Of a DNA stretch of 64,000 bases, positions 10,533-60,321 are shown in pieces. The notes below the pieces were generated by a model. The model did no database searches. It was not told where the DNA came from and worked only from the letters and a program-made list of their open reading frames with translations. Position 1 is the first letter of the stretch; each line of letters begins with the position of its first letter. The stretch lies in IMG/VR virus record IMGVR_UViG_3300017917_002374, positions 1 through 64,000 of that record. The stretch is one strand, 5' to 3'. The translations under genes were made by a program, and so were the position numbers.

Positions 10533-12524
10533 ATGTTTTTTGGATATCTCATTCTTTTAATTGCCATTCTTATTTCGGCGATAGCGGCATACTACTCTGT
10601 GGTAGGACTCACAGCGATATTTGCTGCGGCAGTGCTGCCCGTAATGATCATGGGCGGCGCACTAGAAGCCGGCAAGATTGTGGCCACAGTATGGTTACAC
10701 AATAACTGGCAACGCATAGGATGGGCATTCAAAACCTATCTAGTGCCTGCTATCGTATTTCTCATGCTGCTCACCAGCATGGGTATCTTTGGATTCCTTA
10801 GCAAAGCACACAGTGACCAAGGACTGGTCAGTGGTGACAGTCAAGCCAAACTGGCCATATATGATGAAAAAATTAAAACCTCTCGTGATAACATCGAAAC
10901 CAACCGCAAGGCTCTTAAACAAATGGATGAGGCTGTGGACCAAATCATGGGTCGCAGTACAGATGAAAAGGGAGCCGATAAGGCAGTGGCAGTGCGCCGG
11001 AATCAACAAAAGGAACGTACTAGGCTCCTTGCTGAAATTGACGCCGAGCAGAAAAAGATTGCTCGCCTTAACGAAGAAGCAGCGCCAATACGAGCAGAGA
11101 ATAGAAAGATTGAAGCCGAGGTAGGCCCAATCAAATATATCGCTGCACTGATCTATGGTGACAATCCTGATGCCAATCTACTGGAAGCAGCAGTGCGCTG
11201 GGTGATCATATTGATTGTGATTGTGTTTGATCCTTTGGCACTAACCTTGATTCTAGCTGGTAACAAACAACTGGAGTGGGCTCGCGAAGATCGTCGTAAA
11301 CAAGATCAAGAGTTTGATGAGAAGTATGTGGAAATACCCACAGAGCCAGCCAAGGAGTTTAGCCTATTCCAGTGGACCAAGCCAGAAGAAATTCCTCCTG
11401 AAGAAGAAAAGTCTGTTGAAGTGGCACAAAATGTACAAGACACGCCACCACCTCCGGAGGATCTTGGGTTGTGTCCAAAATGTGATACGCCTATACAGTC
11501 AGCACCGGGTATCGGCCCATTCTGCCCTAATAAAGACTGCGATGTAGTAGATGGGTTAGAACAGGCTAGAAAAGAATTGGCAGACAAAGAACAAGAAGAA
11601 TTTTTCTTCCGCAGCCGCATGATTGCCAAAGGCCTGGACGCAGAAGAACAAGAACGCATGATCACTGAAGCCAACACTGCTTTGGCGGCTATTGGCGATC
11701 AAGACTATGACATTGAGTCTGTGGTAGAACAAGCAGAAAAAATCAATGCCTACGAACAACAGATTGCCGGTCTAGCAGAAGAAAAAGAAAATCTAGCAAT
11801 TGAAAAAAACAAATTGCAAGAAGCACTGGATCTGTTGGCAGTGGAATTTGAAAGAGTAAACAACCACCTGCCTGATGTAGAAGTGTATAGAAACCAACTA
11901 GAACAGCAGGTGGCGCAACTGTCGGCTGAAAAATACATCATTGAACGAGAACTGGTTAGCACAAAAGAAACTCTTGAGTCCACAGTGCAAAGACAACAGG
12001 AACTAGAACAGTTTTTGGACACACTGCCTCCTCAATTGGATCAGCTGGAGACAGTAAAAACTCAACTGCAAACTGAAATTCAAAGTCTGTTGACTGACAA
12101 TCGTCAGTTGAGAGAATGGGTGGATCAACTGGAAAAAGATCTTAAAGAAGCAGTTGAACTAGCACAGCAAAAAACCCAAGCACTGGCACAAGTTCAAGAA
12201 CCGCAGGTGGCTGTGACAGCCGACAACGATGACGGCACTCCCAATGACACCAAGGCAACTTTTGGTACAGAATTTCCTAAAAATCAAAAGAAAGGTGATC
12301 TTTTTCTAAGAGTGGATTATTTGCCCAGCAGACTGTTCAAGTGGAACGGAACCAAGTGGATTGAGATTGATAGAGATCAAACCGATCGCTATGCCTATGA
12401 CAGCGCATATATAAGAATGCTGGTAGAAAAACTGCAATCAGGCGAATATGATATTGATGATTTAAACGAACTAGAAAGATCACAAGTAAGCACATATCTA
12501 AACGATCCTCGTACGGATGCATAG
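10533..12524 (+). CDS. Multi-pass membrane protein with coiled coils and a C4 zinc ribbon
   Basis: N-terminal TM helices, further TM near aa 225, CPKC...CPNKDC, long heptad region. Confidence 0.7.
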   Translation: MFFGYLILLIAILISAIAAYYSVVGLTAIFAAAVLPVMIMGGALEAGKIVATVWLHNNWQRIGWAFKTYLVPAIVFLMLLTSMGIFGFLSKAHSDQGLVSGDSQAKLAIYDEKIKTSRDNIETNRKALKQMDEAVDQIMGRSTDEKGADKAVAVRRNQQKERTRLLAEIDAEQKKIARLNEEAAPIRAENRKIEAEVGPIKYIAALIYGDNPDANLLEAAVRWVIILIVIVFDPLALTLILAGNKQLEWAREDRRKQDQEFDEKYVEIPTEPAKEFSLFQWTKPEEIPPEEEKSVEVAQNVQDTPPPPEDLGLCPKCDTPIQSAPGIGPFCPNKDCDVVDGLEQARKELADKEQEEFFFRSRMIAKGLDAEEQERMITEANTALAAIGDQDYDIESVVEQAEKINAYEQQIAGLAEEKENLAIEKNKLQEALDLLAVEFERVNNHLPDVEVYRNQLEQQVAQLSAEKYIIERELVSTKETLESTVQRQQELEQFLDTLPPQLDQLETVKTQLQTEIQSLLTDNRQLREWVDQLEKDLKEAVELAQQKTQALAQVQEPQVAVTADNDDGTPNDTKATFGTEFPKNQKKGDLFLRVDYLPSRLFKWNGTKWIEIDRDQTDRYAYDSAYIRMLVEKLQSGEYDIDDLNELERSQVSTYLNDPRTDA

Positions 12525-12873
12525 CAATTTTATTACTCCACCAGATTTCGTTGACAACAACTTACCAACTATATTGGTAGTTGATGCTGCTTGGGATGAT
12601 ATAGAAACTCTAGCATTGTATTGTCAAAATTCAAATTATCTTTATAATGTGTATATCTATCAAGATGTGATGTTCGATACCGAATGGCTGCAACAAGCTG
12701 CACTAAGATCACATGCCATAATCATGAACTCAGATCAAAGTGCATGCACCAACGAAAAAAATAAATTTTTGAAAGAATCTAAAACTTGGTATTACGGTCC
12801 TAATCGTTATCTAGGCAACAACAATCAGTTGCAATCTTTGATTGAATTTTTTATAAAACATAATGAACAATAA
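12517..12873 (+). CDS. Hypothetical protein
   Basis: Overlapping packing with both neighbours. Confidence 0.6.
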   Translation: MHSNFITPPDFVDNNLPTILVVDAAWDDIETLALYCQNSNYLYNVYIYQDVMFDTEWLQQAALRSHAIIMNSDQSACTNEKNKFLKESKTWYYGPNRYLGNNNQLQSLIEFFIKHNEQ

Positions 12874-14071
12874 TGTACACCATGTGCTGTGCAATTTTTG
12901 TGGTAAAAGTCGCAGCGAAGTAGACAAACTTATCGTGGCCAATGACGCCGGTATATGCAACGAGTGTATTGAGTTTTGTGCAGATCTCTTGAATCGCGAA
13001 CGTATCAAAAATATTCAATCTGATAAGAAAATTTCAAGATCACTTGATGCAGTCAAACTCAAGAACTATCTTGATGAGTATATTATTGGTCAAGAGCAGG
13101 CCAAGATAGCTCTAGCAGTGGCAGTGGTCAATCACTACAAAAGAATTTATTTTCAACCCGACATAGAACTAGAAAAAAGCAATCTGCTGATATATGGTCC
13201 TACTGGTGTTGGTAAAACCATGCTGGCAAAAACTGTAGCCAAATATCTAAATGTGCCATTTGTGATTGCTGATGCTACCACTCTTACTCAGGCAGGATAT
13301 GTAGGCGATGATGTTGAAAGTGTGATTTCAAGATTGTTTAGCGAAGCAGATTTTGACATTGACAAGTGCCAACAGGGCATAGTGTTTATTGACGAAATTG
13401 ATAAAATCAGTAGAAAAAATGAAAGCAGTAATCTGCACCGTGATGTAGGCGGCGAGGGTGTGCAACAGGCCCTGCTCAAGCTGGTCGAAGGTACCAAATG
13501 CACTGTGAGTGTGGAGTCAAGAAAAAAACACCCCAGTGTTGATACTGTGGAAATAGACACAAAAAATATTCTTTTTGTTGCAGGTGGAGCATTTGACGGG
13601 CTGGAAAAAGTGGTATCCGCTAGAGCCAAAGGCAACAGCATAGGATTTACATCTCAGGCTGTGGAAAATTCTTCTGGCCAGGTGTTGGCCGAAGATTTTA
13701 TCAACTACGGCATGATTCCTGAATTTATAGGCAGATTTCCTGTTACAGTAAGTGTTAATGCACTGGGACTAGAAGATCTAACAAGAGTGCTAGTTGAACC
13801 TAAAAGTAGTTTACTGCAACAAATGCAGTGGTATTTCAACACCGATGACATTGAGTTAGAGTTTGAAGATCAAGCAGTTCTAGCTATTGCACAACAGGCT
13901 CTGGACAGAGGAATTGGAGCAAGAGGACTTAAAACCATTTTAGAGCAGTGTCTTATGCCTGTTATGTATTCTTTGAACGAACTGAAAACTCAAGGTATAA
14001 GTAAAGTGAGGATTACTAAAAAAGTAATTACAGAAAATCAAAAACCGGAATTTATTAAACATGAGAGATAA
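12863..14071 (+). CDS. clpX: ClpX AAA+ unfoldase
   Basis: CNFC/CNEC zinc domain, GPTGVGKT, GYVG pore loop, DEIDK, RKKHP, IGF loop, GARGL. Confidence 0.96.
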   Translation: MNNNVHHVLCNFCGKSRSEVDKLIVANDAGICNECIEFCADLLNRERIKNIQSDKKISRSLDAVKLKNYLDEYIIGQEQAKIALAVAVVNHYKRIYFQPDIELEKSNLLIYGPTGVGKTMLAKTVAKYLNVPFVIADATTLTQAGYVGDDVESVISRLFSEADFDIDKCQQGIVFIDEIDKISRKNESSNLHRDVGGEGVQQALLKLVEGTKCTVSVESRKKHPSVDTVEIDTKNILFVAGGAFDGLEKVVSARAKGNSIGFTSQAVENSSGQVLAEDFINYGMIPEFIGRFPVTVSVNALGLEDLTRVLVEPKSSLLQQMQWYFNTDDIELEFEDQAVLAIAQQALDRGIGARGLKTILEQCLMPVMYSLNELKTQGISKVRITKKVITENQKPEFIKHER

Positions 14072-54743: not shown

Positions 54744-55376
54744 ATGGCAGAAGAAAAAGTTGACGTAAACAAAAAAATTGACGATCTTGAAGCAGCATCT
54801 AAAAAATATGCTAGTAAAGACACAGTGATCAGTATTGGCGGGTATGAATTTACTCCAGCCAAATTAATGGTGGCATTTACTTTGGTGAGTTCTGCACTAG
54901 GCGGCCTATATGGATGCTTTGAAGTGTACAAAGACTACATGGGCATGAAGAAAAAGATTGCTGAATACGTGAGTCCTGATCTAACAGAAGTTTATAAAAA
55001 GTTGGAAGTGCTAGAAGCCAACACCAACAAAACCGTAGAATACAGCCAAGATATCAAGAACGATCTTAAAAGCGACATTCGCAGACTTGAAGGTGTGGTA
55101 GAAAGTGTAGAGCGTGACAGCAAGGTAGCACAGCGAGATACAGATAAAAGTGTGCAGGATGCACGTAAAGATGTGCGTGAAACCAAAGCAGAAGTAGACA
55201 AAATAACTCGTCAACTGGAAAAAGACACTACCCAGCAAAACAAAGAATTGCAACGCAGTGTTGACAATGCAGTGCGACAGTTACAAAAAGAAAACGAAGC
55301 CGAGCTCAAGTCCATACGCAGAGAGCTAGACGACAAAATCAAAAAAGCTCTGGACAATCCACTCAACAACAAATAA
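54744..55376 (+). CDS. Membrane-anchored coiled-coil protein
   Basis: One TM then long heptads; ends ALDNPL. Confidence 0.7.
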   Translation: MAEEKVDVNKKIDDLEAASKKYASKDTVISIGGYEFTPAKLMVAFTLVSSALGGLYGCFEVYKDYMGMKKKIAEYVSPDLTEVYKKLEVLEANTNKTVEYSQDIKNDLKSDIRRLEGVVESVERDSKVAQRDTDKSVQDARKDVRETKAEVDKITRQLEKDTTQQNKELQRSVDNAVRQLQKENEAELKSIRRELDDKIKKALDNPLNNK

Positions 55377-55383
55377 AACCCAC

Positions 55384-55419
55384 TATAATAAAAAAGCCCG
55401 CAAGGGCTTTTTTATTATA
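55384..55419. terminator. Bidirectional terminator
   Basis: tataataaaaaagccc-gcaa-gggcttttttattata perfect inverted repeat. Confidence 0.85.
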
Positions 55420-55447
55420 AGACAGTTGTCCACTATAAGTAAATTCT

Positions 55448-55699
55448 ATGCTAGATTATGCCTTGACATTCTTTTCCATTTTTTTTCTTGATATTGTGTA
55501 TACATACTATCTAAGATGTGTGGCCAAAGAGCATGTGTTGGGCGCCAGTTTTTGGAGTGTGGCCTGTTATCTACTGGGCAGCATTGCAGTAATCAGCTAT
55601 ACCACAAATCATTGGTTGATTATTCCTGCGGTGATTGGTGCTTTCTGTGGGACCTATGTAGGGATGAAGCTGAAAAAGCTGAATTTTTTAACAGAGTAA
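55448..55699 (+). CDS. Small 3-TM membrane protein
   Basis: Hydrophobicity pattern. Confidence 0.6.
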   Translation: MLDYALTFFSIFFLDIVYTYYLRCVAKEHVLGASFWSVACYLLGSIAVISYTTNHWLIIPAVIGAFCGTYVGMKLKKLNFLTE

Positions 55700-55707
55700 A
55701 TACTGTT

Positions 55708-56352
55708 ATGAAACCTACCATTGCCATGTTTTTGTATCAGCCTCGTGCAAGTGTACAATGCGGTAATGCAATGATGGAGGCTCTATCTGACTACTACCGA
55801 TTCAAGATCTTTACCAAGCAAGAAATGGAAGAAGATTTTTTTGATGATGTAGACATTGTGGCTTTTCCGGGTGGTGACGGCGATAGTGAAAGCTATCGCT
55901 TTTTAATGAAACATCACCAAAAACGCATTCAAAATTTTGTTGCCAATGGCGGGCGTTATTTGGGCATTTGCATGGGCGCATACTGGGCAGGATCACATTA
56001 TTTTAATATTCTACATCATGTGGATGCTGTGCAGTATATCACTCGTCCTGGCACAGACACACGTAGACCTCATGCCAAGGCCTGCCCAGTGAACTGGCTT
56101 GGTGAACCCATGCGCATGTATTTTTACGATGGATGTGCATTGGTTGGAGACGAGCGTAGATTTGAAACAGTGGCTCGATACGCAAACGGTGACCCAATGG
56201 CCATATTTCAGGATCGTGTTGGAATCATGGGTTGCCATCCAGAAAGTCAACAGTGGTGGTACAACATGTACAACTATCTCAAGCCACACTATCATAATGG
56301 TTACCATCATCGTTTGCTGTTGGATTTTGTTGACCAACTCATGCGTCAATAA
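55708..56352 (+). CDS. BPL_N / class I glutamine amidotransferase-like protein
   Basis: FPGG, YLGICMGAY, HPE; likely start MKPTI at 55708. Confidence 0.8.
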   Translation: MKPTIAMFLYQPRASVQCGNAMMEALSDYYRFKIFTKQEMEEDFFDDVDIVAFPGGDGDSESYRFLMKHHQKRIQNFVANGGRYLGICMGAYWAGSHYFNILHHVDAVQYITRPGTDTRRPHAKACPVNWLGEPMRMYFYDGCALVGDERRFETVARYANGDPMAIFQDRVGIMGCHPESQQWWYNMYNYLKPHYHNGYHHRLLLDFVDQLMRQ

Positions 56353-56437
56353 GTTTTTTCTATTCAATTCATAAAAATATATTTGGTAAAAACCTATGGA
56401 AAATGCCTAGACAATAGGCATTGTAGTCATATATAAT
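56349..56437 (+). promoter_or_regulatory. Putative OxyR-type site and promoter of ahpC
   Basis: ATAA-N7-CTAT-N7-ATAA ... TTGG-N7-CTAT next to TAGACA(56408)-18-TATAAT. Confidence 0.5.
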
Positions 56438-56473
56438 TGTTTTATGCACTGCAACATTATTCAAGGAGATAAA

Positions 56474-57007
56474 ATGAAAACCGTAGGTGATAAGATTGAG
56501 AAGTTTGCCGTTACTGGTGTGAACCCAGGCAAGGATGATTTCTTTGCCATTACAGATGAGAGCTTTGCTGGCAAGTGGAAAGTGATTGTTTACTATCCAA
56601 AAGACTTTACCTTTGTGTGTCCAACTGAAATCGTGGCATACGACAAACTGTTCCAGGATTTTGCTGACCGTGACGCTGTGCTGCTCACAGGCTCAACAGA
56701 CAACGAGTTCTGCAAGTTGGCATGGCAGAACGCACATGAGGATCTGAAAAAGATTCGTCACATTCAGTTTGCTGACACTGCTCGTGATGACAACAGTCTG
56801 ATCAATCAACTGGGCGTGTTCTATGCACCAGCTGGTGCAGCACTACGTGCCACCTTTATTGTTGATCCAGAGGGTGTGATTCAGCATGTGACCGTGAACA
56901 ACCTCAACGTTGGTCGTAGTCCAGAAGAAACACTGCGTGTGCTGGATGCACTGCAAACAGGCGAACTGTGTGCATGTAACCGTAACATTGGCGGCGAAAC
57001 ACTTTAA
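56474..57007 (+). CDS. ahpC: Peroxiredoxin AhpC
   Basis: YPKDFTFVCPTE, RATFIVDP, GRSPEETLR, ELCAC. Confidence 0.95.
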   Translation: MKTVGDKIEKFAVTGVNPGKDDFFAITDESFAGKWKVIVYYPKDFTFVCPTEIVAYDKLFQDFADRDAVLLTGSTDNEFCKLAWQNAHEDLKKIRHIQFADTARDDNSLINQLGVFYAPAGAALRATFIVDPEGVIQHVTVNNLNVGRSPEETLRVLDALQTGELCACNRNIGGETL

Positions 57008-57019
57008 TAGGAGGCTCAA

Positions 57020-57424
57020 ATGCTAGAATGTTTGATTGTTGGAGACAGTATTGCAGTAGGTGTAAGTCAAGTAAGACCTGAATGCCGGTCCATTGCGAAA
57101 AGTGGAATTAATTCTGCCAATTGGAACAAGCAGCATTTGAACAAACTGCAACCAACCAAGACCATGATTATCAGCCTGGGTGCAAATGACCTAGGGGTGA
57201 ACACTGAAGAAAACATTCGCCAACTGCGTGAACGTGCGCAGGCTGATAGAGTGTTTTGGTTGTTGCCCAGTCAGCGACTGAAACCTGATCAGGTACGAGC
57301 TGTAAAATTTGTTGCCATAGACTACGGTGATACAGTGATACCAAGGCCCGAGCGAGACATCAGTGCTGATGGGGTGCATCCTACATATAAAGGATATAAA
57401 GTTTTAGGAGAATTAACACGATGA
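57020..57424 (+). CDS. SGNH/GDSL hydrolase
   Basis: GDSI, LGAND, DGVHP. Confidence 0.85.
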   Translation: MLECLIVGDSIAVGVSQVRPECRSIAKSGINSANWNKQHLNKLQPTKTMIISLGANDLGVNTEENIRQLRERAQADRVFWLLPSQRLKPDQVRAVKFVAIDYGDTVIPRPERDISADGVHPTYKGYKVLGELTR

Positions 57425-57933
57425 GTTGGTTAGAACAGATCAAGTCAGGACTTCCTGACTACGCAAAAGATACTAAATTAAATTTAGATGCTGTGATACT
57501 TCGCAGTACCTTGGATCCAGTTGAGGCAAACGCTGTTGCATTAGCAGCGGCCATGGCTACAGGCAATGGCAAGTTGGTGACCTTTATTCAAAGCAACATT
57601 GAAGATGCCAAGGAACGTGATGCTGCCCTGACAGCGGCCGCTATCATGGCGCAGAACAATGTATGGTATCCGTATGTTGAAATGACCGACGATGAAAATC
57701 TCAAAGGCTTGCCTGCGCAACTGCGTATGAACGCCATTGCCAGCCATGGTGGTACAACCAAGGCTCGTTTTGAAGCATATAGTCTTGCTGCCAGCATTGT
57801 GGGCAAGTGTCATTTCTGTGTGAAAGCGCACTATGAAACTCTCAAACAGGAAGGCTACACAGTTGAACATCTTCGTGACATTGGACGTATTGCAGCCGTA
57901 ATCACCAGTGTGGCTAGAGTGCTGAATTCCTAA
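57421..57933 (+). CDS. ahpD: Alkyl hydroperoxidase AhpD
   Basis: LPDYAKD.KLNL, MAQNNVWY, LRMN, GKCHFCV.AH. Confidence 0.93.
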   Translation: MSWLEQIKSGLPDYAKDTKLNLDAVILRSTLDPVEANAVALAAAMATGNGKLVTFIQSNIEDAKERDAALTAAAIMAQNNVWYPYVEMTDDENLKGLPAQLRMNAIASHGGTTKARFEAYSLAASIVGKCHFCVKAHYETLKQEGYTVEHLRDIGRIAAVITSVARVLNS

Positions 57934-58046
57934 AGAAAATCACGAGTACAAAATCATGATGTACTGGATACGAAATGTCCAAAATTCATCGTATAATTCA
58001 GATACATACTGTTGCAGTATGTTAATTTTAATCAAGGAGAAATAAC

Positions 58047-58121
58047 ATGGCATGGACTACACCTCAAGCAACCGACCTTCGGTACGGTTTTGAAATTTCA
58101 ATGTATATCGCCAACCGCTAA
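58047..58121 (+). CDS. pqqA: Coenzyme PQQ precursor peptide MAWTTPQATDLRYGFEISMYIANR (not in ORF track)
   Basis: 24 aa; W..P...DLR.GFE...YI.NR with the ExxxY core; SD aaggag. Confidence 0.93.
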   Translation: MAWTTPQATDLRYGFEISMYIANR

Positions 58122-58139
58122 TATACATTTGAAATAAAG

Positions 58140-58616
58140 TTAGCCCTCTTGTAGGGCTTTCTTTTTGGCTCTTGTTTCTGCAAGAGTGCGTCTAATTTTT
58201 TCTCTGGTTTCTTCTGTTACGGCATGTCCTTTTCTAGATGCTGCCCAATTGGCTAAATGCTCGGGAGATTTAGTTTTACCTTTATGAGATTCAGATCGTT
58301 TCTTATTTGCGTTAAGCAAGGTACCATCAGCTCGTTGTCGTTCAGTTCGTTTGGTACATGCTTCTTTCATTTTAGCAATGGCTTCGGGTGTGTGTTTCTT
58401 GCCTTTCATCCCCATACCTTGTTTCATCCTTAACATTTCTTCTTGTCCTATTCTTTTAGAAAGTGCAAGCCAAGCAATTTTATCTTGTATATTTCCATGC
58501 TGCTCGTACAATACACGATGAGCTTCCGCATGCTCCTCTACTGTAAGCTCTACTAGATTACTCGGATCGTCTGTGCCGCCCATGTATTTGGGTATGATAT
58601 GGTGTATGTGTTTCAT
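58140..58616 (-). mobile_element. Free-standing HNH homing endonuclease with NUMOD3-type tail
   Basis: HHIIPKYMGGTDDPSNLV..EEHAEAH; GKKHTPE, GKTKSPEH, VTEETREKI; likely start MKHIH at 58616. Confidence 0.85.
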
Positions 58617-58733
58617 GTAATTATTTAGCAATCGTGACTTCAAAACCTAGTGTTAAAAAATCAAGATCTTTTTGGTTGACCATTTTGTTCACATGCACTA
58701 CAATACAAGCTCTATCACTTGATTCTCACAATT

Positions 58734-59186
58734 ATGACTTTGCTAATTCTAGTTTTGATCTTTGCTGCGATCATACGCTGGTACGAAACCAACGAATATT
58801 TTTGGATACTAGCGTGGCCGGGCACTATCATGCATGAACTGCTACATGCCGTGGTTGGATTTGTGATGTTGGCACAGCCCAGCAATTTCAGCATTCTACC
58901 TCGCCGCACAGAATTTGGTATGGAATTGGGCAGTGTGGGATTTGATAACCTCACCTGGTACAATAAACTGCCCATTGCAGTGGCGCCGTTGCTGGCTATA
59001 CCCATTGTTTTTATTGCAACTAATAGTATTACATTTTCAACAACTGTTACAGGATTTGCAACTGTTTGGATTCTAGCAAGCATGTTGAGCCAGTGTATGC
59101 CCAGCAAACAGGACTGGCAAGTTGGGTTCAGTAGCCCTGTGGGTGTAGCAGCCTGGGCAGGTGTTGCATATTTGCTAATTCGCTAA
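58734..59186 (+). CDS. Membrane zinc metalloprotease (M50B-like)
   Basis: PGTIMHELLH, APL, PSKQD, TM helices; promoter TTGACC(58676)-17-TACAAT. Confidence 0.7.
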   Translation: MTLLILVLIFAAIIRWYETNEYFWILAWPGTIMHELLHAVVGFVMLAQPSNFSILPRRTEFGMELGSVGFDNLTWYNKLPIAVAPLLAIPIVFIATNSITFSTTVTGFATVWILASMLSQCMPSKQDWQVGFSSPVGVAAWAGVAYLLIR

Positions 59187-59187
59187 C

Positions 59188-59244
59188 GGTTGACCAAAAA
59201 TACCCATTTTGCTATACTATAGGCATACGTTAACAAAAAGGAGC
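59188..59244 (+). promoter_or_regulatory. Repeated early promoter-leader-SD cassette
   Basis: Identical to 47855-47911. Confidence 0.9.
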
Positions 59245-59249
59245 GATAA

Positions 59250-59573
59250 ATGGCCAAACTGCTGATCACCACCCAAGTGTTTGAAAACTATGCCTGGCGC
59301 GAAGATGGCACTCTGGGCACAGGTGCTGATGCCTACTGGAAGGCCAAAGGCGGCAACGACTACGTGGTCAAGAATTTCAAGGGCAATGAGCAGGATGCCA
59401 CTGTGGCTGTGATGGCCCTGCGTGAGCAGATTGAACAGGCCAACGACGGCTACATGGAGCACATTGTTGATTTTACTATTGTGGCTGACGACCACCTTAC
59501 CGAGTTTGAGCGTAGCCAACTGGAGTACGAGGGCTGTATTACATTTCCTGCAACAGAATTGCAATTTGCCTAA
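59250..59573 (+). CDS. Small early hypothetical protein
   Basis: ENY..YWKAKGG..FERSQLEYEG. Confidence 0.7.
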   Translation: MAKLLITTQVFENYAWREDGTLGTGADAYWKAKGGNDYVVKNFKGNEQDATVAVMALREQIEQANDGYMEHIVDFTIVADDHLTEFERSQLEYEGCITFPATELQFA

Positions 59574-59575
59574 CA

Positions 59576-59631
59576 GTTGACCAAAAAGATCCGTTTTGCT
59601 ATAATATAGGCATACGTTAACAAATAGGAGC
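59576..59631 (+). promoter_or_regulatory. Repeated early cassette
   Basis: TTGACC(59577)-17-TATAAT-ataggcatacgttaacaaatAGGAG. Confidence 0.88.
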
Positions 59632-59635
59632 TCAT

Positions 59636-59872
59636 ATGATACTAGCAGACACTGTTACAACTCTTACAACCATGACCCCAAAGAGCCTGGCTAAAACGCT
59701 GGACACCAGTGGTTACAAAGATTGCAAGTTTGACACCGCTAAATTTTTGGGCTTGACCAACGGTAAGCAATTCTGCTACTCTGTGACTTTTGTTGAAGAC
59801 GGACAGGTGCAGACCAGCAAGGTGTTTGTGCGTTACGATTCTGCTACGGGCTTTATCACTGCTGATTTCTAA
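59636..59872 (+). CDS. Small early hypothetical protein
   Basis: Follows the cassette. Confidence 0.7.
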   Translation: MILADTVTTLTTMTPKSLAKTLDTSGYKDCKFDTAKFLGLTNGKQFCYSVTFVEDGQVQTSKVFVRYDSATGFITADF

Positions 59873-59875
59873 AAC

Positions 59876-59931
59876 GGTTGACCAAAAATACCCATTTTGT
59901 TATAATGTTGTTATCGTAACTGATAAGGAGC
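59876..59931 (+). promoter_or_regulatory. Early cassette with variant leader
   Basis: TTGACC(59878)-aaaaatacccattttgt-TATAAT; SD aaggag. Confidence 0.85.
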
Positions 59932-59937
59932 TCACAA

Positions 59938-60321
59938 ATGGCTTATATTTCCGCTCAAGATGTTGCAGCAATTCGCGCAGAACTCAAGCAATCCTTTCCT
60001 GGTTGGAAGTTTAGTGTTCGCAAAGGCTCAGGCTCGTTGAGTGTGGATGTTACTATCCTGCAAGGTGATGTGGACTTTAGCGAGAACTTGGACCACGGCT
60101 ATTGCCAGGTGAACCAGTATTGGATCAATGATCATTGGACCAATCCAGCGGCTCGTGATGCACTCACCCGTATCAATGATATCATGCACCATGCACCGGG
60201 TCGTGCAGGTGGCAAGAAATACTTTGATGAAAGTGACGCCATGACCGATTACTTTCACACTGCATTCTACACTCATCTGAGCATTGGTGACTGGCGCAAA
60301 GAATACGCACTGGTGAAATAA
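59938..60321 (+). CDS. LPD29-like protein
   Basis: IRAELKQSFPGWKFSVR...FDESDAMTDYF. Confidence 0.65.
   Translation: MAYISAQDVAAIRAELKQSFPGWKFSVRKGSGSLSVDVTILQGDVDFSENLDHGYCQVNQYWINDHWTNPAARDALTRINDIMHHAPGRAGGKKYFDESDAMTDYFHTAFYTHLSIGDWRKEYALVK

Follow-up and report, generated by a model that had tools for sequence, protein, structure and literature searches.

A stand-alone pqqA gene in a jumbo phage genome, a probable auxiliary gene for pyrroloquinoline quinone synthesis by the host

Pyrroloquinoline quinone (PQQ), which methanol, ethanol and glucose dehydrogenases require, is made from the small peptide PqqA, which PqqD binds and the radical-SAM enzyme PqqE cross-links between Glu16 and Tyr20; after trimming, PqqB and PqqC complete the cofactor, and each PQQ costs one peptide. 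Auxiliary phage genes that replenish the consumable part of a host pathway are exemplified by cyanophage psbA, which encodes the D1 protein, and large freshwater phages of methanotrophs reportedly carry pmoC. In this study, a pqqA gene standing alone at 58047..58121 on the + strand of the first 64,000 nucleotides (the window) of the IMG/VR virus record IMGVR_UViG_3300017917_002374 was analyzed, and it was concluded that the gene probably serves the host PQQ pathway during infection.

Phage pqqA was reported in 2020, and this case therefore introduces no new principle. Coutinho et al. (2020, Microbiome 8:163, PMC7678222) described PqqA and methanol dehydrogenase in T4-like Lake Baikal phages, for which Methylophilaceae hosts were predicted, and proposed an auxiliary role for viral PqqA. 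A 2026 paper counted viral pqqA, pqqD and pqqE among phosphorus-cycling genes. PQQ appears in the paper on phage Melnitz only as a medium supplement, the medium published for OM43 having 1 nM PQQ (PMC9004378); pqqA is mentioned neither there nor in the paper on phage Venkman, and beyond Coutinho et al. no link of pqqA to methylotroph viruses was found in the literature searched. Both the breadth of lone phage pqqA and its presence in cultured systems appear to be under-reported. The details added here are a 132-nucleotide cassette, signals that are not those of the phage, sporadic presence within the phage clade, and an adjoining polymorphic HNH endonuclease gene.

The 24-codon open reading frame (ORF), MAWTTPQATDLRYGFEISMYIANR, ends with the stop codon TAA and encodes a PQQ precursor peptide. 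Residues Glu16-Ile-Ser-Met-Tyr20 form the Glu-X3-Tyr core, in the same register as in 119 viral and 120 bacterial copies, and the W-x-x-P leader is present as Trp3 and Pro6. The peptide scored 28.4 bits against PF08042 (cut-off 21.1, E 1.6e-6) and 27.6 bits against TIGR02107 (cut-off 20), with positions 1-21 of the 21 positions of the latter model covered. When all six frames of the 355-kb genome were scanned, no other PqqA match rose above the cut-off, and the genome-wide E value of 5.3e-6 indicates that the match is more than chance. A Shine-Dalgarno sequence, AAGGAG (58034..58039, + strand), lies 7 nucleotides before the ATG, and a GGAG-type element is found just upstream of nearly all of the 119 viral copies. 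The initial annotation had described a 24-residue ORF with a strong Shine-Dalgarno sequence, the PqqA signature, a TATAAT box, a hairpin and an upstream ahpD gene, all of which were found at the coordinates claimed; a hidden Markov model search, which it had put forward as a check, gave in this genome a single match that passes both curated models.

Co-folding of the phage peptide with the PqqD of genome G002 gave an ipSAE of 0.52 compared to 0.02 for the best control, with the predicted contacts confined to PqqA residues 1-13 and the core left free. The mark used in this analysis is reached by 51 of 78 solved complexes and by two of 108 mismatched pairs, and passes at or below 0.60 count as weak, so that the prediction lends weak support to the likeness of the peptide to a PqqA and does not speak to binding.

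The gene lies within a bona fide contiguous viral genome and is surrounded by viral genes. The record, of which the window is the first part, has 354,959 bp, terminal repeats of 99 bp, a CheckV completeness of 100%, a GC content of 42.7% and 30 tRNAs, and encodes RIIA, an ATP-dependent DNA ligase and virion proteins. Contigs from two independent sequencing runs (X2 and X3) span the ahpD-pqqA junction and the junction downstream of pqqA, and the gene order around pqqA is kept in the related phage contigs L285 (78 kb) and L274 (144 kb). The recurrence of the junctions in independent metagenomes and in relatives indicates that the locus is not chimeric, and assembly chimerism with a host contig, raised earlier as a possible objection, was thereby excluded. 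About ten metagenome studies, of ponds, lakes, rivers, soil and other freshwater sites, contained near-identical sequence; megablast of positions 55000-60000 against phage records gave no match. In IMG/VR, at least 597 relatives of the ligase were found at 59-72% identity, many of them on contigs of 200-374 kb, which places the phage in a large uncultured clade. Its nearest cultured relatives are the PA5oct-like Pseudomonas jumbo phages; their RIIA is only about 30% identical and was rejected as a clue to the host because it is too distant. The window reads normally under translation table 11, and a tRNA with the amber-reading anticodon CTA was called by ARAGORN at G000:C1:318225-318298.

Family scans for PqqB, PqqC, PqqD and PqqE found none in the whole 355-kb genome, so that the absence of pqqB-E, noted previously for the window, extends to the complete phage. 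Scans of the genome for PF01011 quinoproteins and for the AmoC/PmoC family also gave no match. The single PQQ_2 match, a weak one at 299890-300507, was rejected as a quinoprotein, as it belongs to a 1,329-residue Mtd_N tail-fibre-like protein.

Comparison with the closest variants of the gene showed that the peptide is conserved and not just the DNA, since the changes are almost all synonymous. All six site differences between the X2 variant and phage pqqA are synonymous (P ~1e-4 for random changes), and in L285, whose cassette and HNH region has 79% DNA identity to the phage, 12 changed codons are synonymous and one is nonsynonymous. Across phages, as many as 16 different DNA sequences specify one and the same PqqA peptide, although this set was gathered with a pattern that constrains the amino acids, which inflates the synonymous ratio. 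On the strength of these sequence comparisons, phage pqqA is under strong purifying selection.

The reading that best accommodates a genuine PqqA, in a genuine phage, without pqqB-E and with selection at the level of the peptide is the one first suggested for this locus, namely that phage pqqA is an auxiliary metabolic gene feeding the PqqB-E pathway of the host during infection, to which we assign a probability of roughly 70%. According to this proposal, host RNA polymerase would make a short monocistronic mRNA of about 165 nucleotides during infection, which would begin with a 5' stem-loop and stop at an intrinsic terminator. The signals used would be a -10 box and an upstream ATCATGAT palindrome, resembling those of host pqqA genes, and not the TTGACC-N17-TATAAT promoter of the phage. 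Host PqqD would bind the leader (residues 1-13), PqqE would cross-link Glu16 and Tyr20, and a host protease, PqqB and PqqC would complete PQQ. The phage copy could thus keep the PQQ supply going while host transcription declines, and sustained PQQ would maintain the periplasmic oxidation of alcohols, methanol or sugars and its energy yield.

Expression data from the literature are consistent with a bottleneck in the supply of the PqqA peptide. In Methylosinus trichosporium OB3b, an orphan and unannotated pqqA had reads of about 11,900-13,900 compared to 140-370 for pqqB-G (PMC3615186), and FJNU-6, a methylotrophic PQQ-production strain, has five pqqA copies, three of which stand alone (PMC9851590). 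As one peptide is destroyed for each PQQ and bacterial pqqA is expressed far above pqqB-G, a phage copy would maintain the supply.

Several observations weigh against the auxiliary role. The pqqA promoter departs from the consensus. The co-folding result is a weak pass of the kind that any close relative of PqqA could be expected to give, and the phage peptide has two substitutions, Tyr13 and Ser18, that were unseen among the 120 bacterial copies retrieved. The gene was found in only two of the 80 closest ligase relatives, within the flanks fetched, and is therefore dispensable for the clade. The loci with the nearest PqqA variants have GC contents (48-59%) that are 6-16 points from that of the phage. 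Finally, no RNA contig covered pqqA in two RNA runs, in which contigs show presence and not absence, and the RNA runs contain only three of 16 sampled cassette words (0.19); one of the runs (X19) is probably DNA. The only hint of transcription from the region is a 248-nucleotide contig of ahpC sequence. This contig, from the freshwater metatranscriptome X20, is identical to phage ahpC at 56716-56963 and may represent DNA carry-over.

Searches of bacterial genomes for related peptides bear on the host. The pattern G-F-E-I-[T/S]-M-Y-I-A-N-R had at least 120 matches in about 185,000 species genomes, and the matches listed were nearly all from Burkholderiales or other betaproteobacteria. The closest peptide among them, with 21 of 24 residues identical, occurs in a freshwater group of seven genomes, four of which are freshwater metagenome-assembled genomes labelled Oxalobacteraceae, Burkholderiaceae or Pseudomonadota; the pqqA loci of the seven have a GC content of 54-59% compared to 42.7% for the phage. 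In all seven genomes pqqA is an orphan. Among the 120 listed loci, pqqB-E lie alongside pqqA in 101, and pqqA is apart from them in 19, including the seven closest, as it also is in many multi-copy genomes; because orphan bacterial copies are common, the missing association with pqqBCDE in the phage is not disqualifying. All five of the closest genomes that were searched have PqqE and three to five PQQ dehydrogenases of the methanol/ethanol family over the cut-off (TIGR03075), and in one closest genome such a dehydrogenase closes the cluster that begins with the orphan pqqA.

This distribution points to a freshwater member of the Burkholderiales that uses PQQ as the probable host. The earlier suggestion of a PQQ-using host is thus upheld by the presence of the nearest PqqA, among the matches listed, in genomes with pqqE and PQQ dehydrogenases. 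Methylotrophy of the host, which had been suggested as well, is plausible from the same comparisons; against it, the peptide is not of the Methylophilaceae type, and the GC content on the host side (48-59%) lies well above the 42.7% of the phage.

In a Burkholderiales sample of 301 genomes, a tally that includes one unpublished genome (G299) on which no particular conclusion depends, 84 had a pqqA match, often in several copies. The small multi-copy genomes encode peptides of the ...EVTMYVMNK or ...VCNR type, as do most phage contigs, and these are 52-65% identical to the phage PqqA. Many Burkholderiales genomes were also observed to carry two divergent pqqA copies about 5-5.7 kb apart, as at G228:C5 14630(-)/20202(+), G186:C12 693328(-)/699041(+) and G249:C1 1504327(-)/1509367(+).

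Lone pqqA genes were found to be widespread in other phages. A degenerate pattern for the PqqA core matched at least 120 IMG/VR contigs, and among the matches listed all 119 extracted ORFs are intact, with 23-25 residues, and none has pqqB-E in its flanks. The neighboring genes belong to several phage lineages and include YqaJ/Sak/DUF3310 recombination modules (siphophage), T4-like RegA, clamp-loader and Hsp20 genes, and capsid genes; about 12 of the loci are T4-like, with RegA and clamp-loader genes beside pqqA.

Tblastn further identified PqqA ORFs in nine records of six cultured methylotroph phages, Melnitz, Venkman, P19250A, MEP301, MEP401 and MEP402 (OM43 and LD28 hosts), as well as in a Manatee Spring podophage. 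Melnitz and Venkman are grown on OM43 strain H5P1, and P19250A on IMCC19250. Among the tblastn matches were Melnitz-1 (MZ577095.1 74882-74953, L004:3001-3072), P19250A (KX815270.1, L005:2998-3066), MEP301 (MW452941.1, L008:2998-3066), Venkman (MT375522.1, L009:2998-3066), MEP402 (OP830907.1, L010:621-689) and MW202481.1 (L007:2119-2187). In the cultured phages and the podophage, the ORFs have 23-25 codons, are intact, are preceded by a Shine-Dalgarno sequence, and are either unannotated or lie under a 'hypothetical protein' on the wrong strand. The gene was annotated as PqqA in none of the six cultured phages, consistent with the initial remark that it is too short for most gene callers. Matches labelled 'Acinetobacter phage MD-2021a' were not counted as evidence from phages, since their pqqA belongs to a bacterial pqqABCDE operon. 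These records (CAKLQF020000010.1 104204-112275, L006, and CAKLQH020000055.1) have a chromosomal pqqABCDE by ppk, with pqqA unannotated, and look like mislabelled bacterial contigs.

The phage pqqA is part of a 132-nucleotide cassette (57992..58123, + strand) consisting of a -10 box, a hairpin, the Shine-Dalgarno sequence and the ORF, which blastn aligned at 81% identity with two otherwise unrelated viral contigs, L013 and L061 (166-kb contig). The similarity to these contigs spans from TATAAT to 2 nucleotides past the stop codon, and the flanks are unrelated. The -10-like box TATAAT (57992..57997, + strand) lies 6 nucleotides before the hairpin and lacks a -35 box, for which reason a consensus scan of the + strand found no full sigma70 promoter at pqqA; the assignment of TATAAT as a putative promoter element draws its support from its conservation in related cassettes. 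GTATAAT occurs upstream of pqqA at 22 of 122 viral loci and at one control locus, and TATAAT-N4-7-ACATAC occurs once in the phage genome, at pqqA (N6).

The hairpin, ACATACTG-ttg-CAGTATGT, has a perfect 8-bp stem (58004..58022, + strand; folding free energy -7.7 kcal/mol, z -2.7), is present in a single copy in the genome and was flagged as terminator-like in the scan. Its most likely role is that of a stem-loop at the 5' end of the pqqA mRNA, but it could alternatively be a weak terminator of the ahpD transcript, which would count against the transcript proposed above. Eight related cassettes share the order of a -10 box, about 6 nucleotides, an ACATAC...GTATGT hairpin with a loop of about 2-12 nucleotides, and a Shine-Dalgarno sequence. 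Covariation among these eight is thin, with six of seven pairs invariant and one showing compensatory changes. Perfect hairpins of at least 6 bp were found at -62..-12 in 62 of 116 viral loci compared to 17 in a control window, which is probably coding and makes the comparison lenient, and the mean folding energy of the -62..-12 region was not below that of the control window (P 0.24).

A palindrome, ATCATGAT (57953..57960, + strand), about 45-50 nucleotides before the presumed transcript start, is a candidate target of a host protein that regulates pqqA, and its position is kept in L285, L274 and a third relative, L122. TAATGAT or AATGATT was found upstream of 30 of 122 viral pqqA loci and of none of the controls, with a peak at -90..-80. 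With a strict motif, (A)TCATGA(T) repeats precede 12 of 20 native pqqA copies of multi-copy bacterial genomes, and they also occur upstream of pqqA at L219 and L138; they look like an undescribed regulatory element of pqqA. Small multi-copy Burkholderiales genomes (L338-L357) were observed to have two to three such repeats before pqqA, often with a hairpin just before the Shine-Dalgarno sequence.

Downstream of pqqA, 21 nucleotides after the stop codon, lies an intrinsic terminator, AGCCCT-cttgt-AGGGCT with a TTTCTTTT tail (58142..58166, both strands; folding free energy -11.7, z -2.4), which shares sequence with the final codons of the convergent HNH gene. Perfect-stem terminators are present within 70 nucleotides of 42 of 117 viral pqqA copies.

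The promoters of the phage itself are of the sigma70 type, TTGACC-N17-TATA(A/C)T, with 24 strict TTGAC-N18-TATAHT matches compared to about one expected, and these strong promoters suggest that the phage relies on host RNA polymerase for the genes concerned. No TTGAC-N18-TATAHT promoter was found at pqqA, and three lie just downstream of it. As pqqA has no phage-type promoter, its signals look imported with the gene. The phage promoter is part of an intergenic repeat, TTGACCaaaaatacccattttgcTATA(A/C)T...AAGGAGC, located at 59167-59244, 59554-59631 and 59873-59904 on the + strand, which precedes many small + strand genes, with further sites at, for example, 41405, 41699, 47857, 101136 and 101671.

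The genes upstream of pqqA could point to a different purpose for the peptide. Directly upstream is a gene for an AhpD-like alkylhydroperoxidase of the CMD family with a CxxC motif (57421..57933, + strand), which scored 43.4 bits with PF02627 (CMD), over the cut-off, 28.3 with TIGR00778 (cut-off 27.8) and 123.6 with TIGR00777, below its cut-off of 191.95. This gene is preceded by one for a GDSL/SGNH-like hydrolase (57020..57424, + strand; PF13472 30.6 bits, below the 32.9 cut-off), a homolog of which adjoins pqqA in L122, L274, L285 and L106, and by one for an AhpC/Prx-type peroxiredoxin (56444..57007, + strand; PF00578 79.8 bits; TIGR03137 124 bits, below the cut-off). A gene for a BPL_N/GATase-like protein also lies upstream of pqqA. 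It is conceivable, although rather improbable, that the phage boosts PQQ for an oxidative-stress module with AhpC and AhpD and not for an energy supply driven by dehydrogenases; PQQ might itself serve as an antioxidant, or the peroxidases might remove the peroxide of the final step, in which PqqC releases H2O2, and protect the oxygen-sensitive PqqE. The location of pqqA immediately after the AhpC/GDSL/AhpD cluster in all three genomes with enough flank (the phage, L285 and L274) speaks for this explanation, as does the unrelated contig L038, with a Methylophilales-type PqqA, in which an AhpC that is only 32% identical is encoded directly downstream of pqqA (L038:3918-4604), apparently a second and independent adjacency of the two genes. 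Against this explanation, the relatives L282, L265 and L328 have AhpC and AhpD but no pqqA, L122 has pqqA and no AhpC or AhpD in the flank fetched, and a peroxiredoxin is missing from the surroundings of most of the 119 viral pqqA loci. The signals and terminator of its own also indicate that pqqA is not in an operon with ahpD.

A decoy function, in which the phage peptide binds PqqD or PqqE, is poorly processed and lowers PQQ synthesis in the host, for example to redirect resources or to block a PQQ-dependent function harmful to the phage, is unlikely. Such a function might be suspected from Tyr13 and Ser18, which are common to the phage and L285 and absent from all 120 bacterial copies retrieved, the retrieval pattern having permitted Ser at position 18; Ser18 lies between the cross-linked residues, and the leader is predicted, in the co-folding described above, to dock on PqqD. 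These substitutions are conservative, however (Phe to Tyr and Thr to Ser), and Glu16, Tyr20 and their spacing are intact. The relatives L274 and L122 have the ordinary Phe13 and Thr18, and the peptide MWTTPAATEMRFGFEVTMYVMNK is encoded both in many viral contigs and in the bacterial genome G183. Most phage PqqA peptides are identical to host copies, which does not fit a decoy.

The restricted occurrence of pqqA in the clade and the gene on its other side could mean that it is a passenger without function, a fragment of host DNA that was acquired recently or brought along by a homing endonuclease and has yet to be lost. Convergent with pqqA is a gene for a free-standing, NUMOD3-like HNH homing endonuclease (58140..58643, - strand; PF01844 24.1 bits, cut-off 21.4; NUMOD3 15 bits, below the 20.4 cut-off). 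Variants without the HNH gene were found in the runs X3 and X2, with joints 58123->58669 and 58063->58669, the former having 37 nucleotides that hold another terminator, and the gene is absent in L274 and present in L285. In the unrelated, T4-like contig L104, an HNH homolog (L104:1717-2190, 54% amino acid identity) immediately follows pqqA on its 3' side, its orientation relative to pqqA being reversed. This polymorphism and the homolog in L104 suggest that the homing endonuclease may target the neighborhood of pqqA. The low count of two carriers among the 80 closest relatives and the mobile, polymorphic HNH gene favor a passenger, but the ORF, Shine-Dalgarno sequence and hairpin remain intact in relatives with 20-30% divergence in the DNA of the cassette or of pqqA, the changes are almost only synonymous, the variants without the HNH gene still carry pqqA, and lone pqqA persists in many phage lineages, all of which makes a lack of function very unlikely. 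The least credible explanation is that conservation acts on a small regulatory RNA or on a DNA site bound by a protein, the open frame being incidental. Although the hairpin arms are conserved and the presumed 167-nucleotide transcript folds better than 200 of 200 shuffles (z -3.7), the concentration of variation at synonymous positions speaks for selection on the protein, two curated protein models recognize the peptide, and no meaningful Rfam match was found (best 18.5 bits, gathering score 50).

L328, L282 and L265 keep AhpC-AhpD and are missing pqqA, and, as few relatives carry the cassette and a mobile HNH endonuclease adjoins it, the cassette is probably an accessory moron. The spot after ahpD seems to be a hotspot for small-gene insertions. 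At this spot, L328 (L328:3723-3930) has a terminator, a TTGACG-N17-TATAAT promoter, a Shine-Dalgarno sequence and a 27-residue hydrophobic ORF.

A more speculative extension, which we regard as doubtful, is that the pqqA unit is a self-contained mobile cassette, made up of a host-type regulator site, a -10 box, a stabilizing 5' hairpin, the ORF and a terminator, moving between unrelated phage lineages, with HNH enzymes that home at pqqA or its edge helping its spread, and that it is controlled by a host regulon. If the cassette keeps host pqqA control elements, the host PQQ/alcohol-oxidation regulon and not the phage programme would switch it on. If this extension were true, pqqA would be a signature, largely unannotated auxiliary gene of phages of PQQ-dependent and methylotrophic betaproteobacteria.

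Being required by the dehydrogenases, PQQ stands at the start of methanol oxidation in lakes and oceans, and a phage gene that sustains its synthesis would couple infection to the turnover of C1 compounds and alcohols. The present analysis indicates that the pqqA of a jumbo phage is a genuine gene kept by selection, and that lone phage pqqA, with at least 120 IMG/VR contigs, is far more common than annotation suggests, so that the blindness of gene callers to short ORFs conceals a recurrent auxiliary gene. The six cultured methylophage-host systems with an unannotated pqqA make the hypothesis testable at the bench now. The shared cassette and the host-type upstream motif also offer a handle on the regulation of pqqA, which is poorly understood in these bacteria.

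In comparison with known systems, the phage gene resembles bacterial pqqA in its length, the W-x-x-P leader, the D-L-R-x-G-F-E-x-x-M-Y core, the Shine-Dalgarno sequence, the organization as a small monocistronic unit with a terminator, and the upstream TCATGA-type elements and pre-Shine-Dalgarno hairpins; it differs in its location in a virus without the rest of the pathway and in Tyr13 and Ser18. A lone pqqA, its interpretation as an auxiliary gene and a predicted freshwater betaproteobacterial host are shared with the Lake Baikal phages (PMC7678222), but those phages are T4-like, have a GC content of about 35% and encode their own methanol dehydrogenase, whereas this phage is a 355-kb jumbo phage with no PQQ-dependent enzyme. 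Its PqqA is also of the Burkholderiales-wide type (...GFEI[T/S]MYIANR), whereas phages of Methylophilales have ...EVTMYVMNK.

Like phage morons, the cassette is a discrete unit with a -10 box and a terminator of its own, few relatives carry it, and its signals are unlike the surrounding phage promoters, although the classical definition comes from lambdoid prophages and not from lytic jumbo phages, and the promoter here is a predicted one. The phages reported to carry pmoC are likewise large, from freshwater and equipped with a single gene from a C1-oxidation pathway; in this phage, which has no AmoC/PmoC match, the link to C1 oxidation is indirect, via PQQ. The logic is the same as that of cyanophage psbA, in which the phage brings the component with the highest turnover and the host machinery does the rest, with the difference that psbA provides a protein subunit, whereas phage PqqA is a 24-residue peptide that is destroyed once for every cofactor molecule made.

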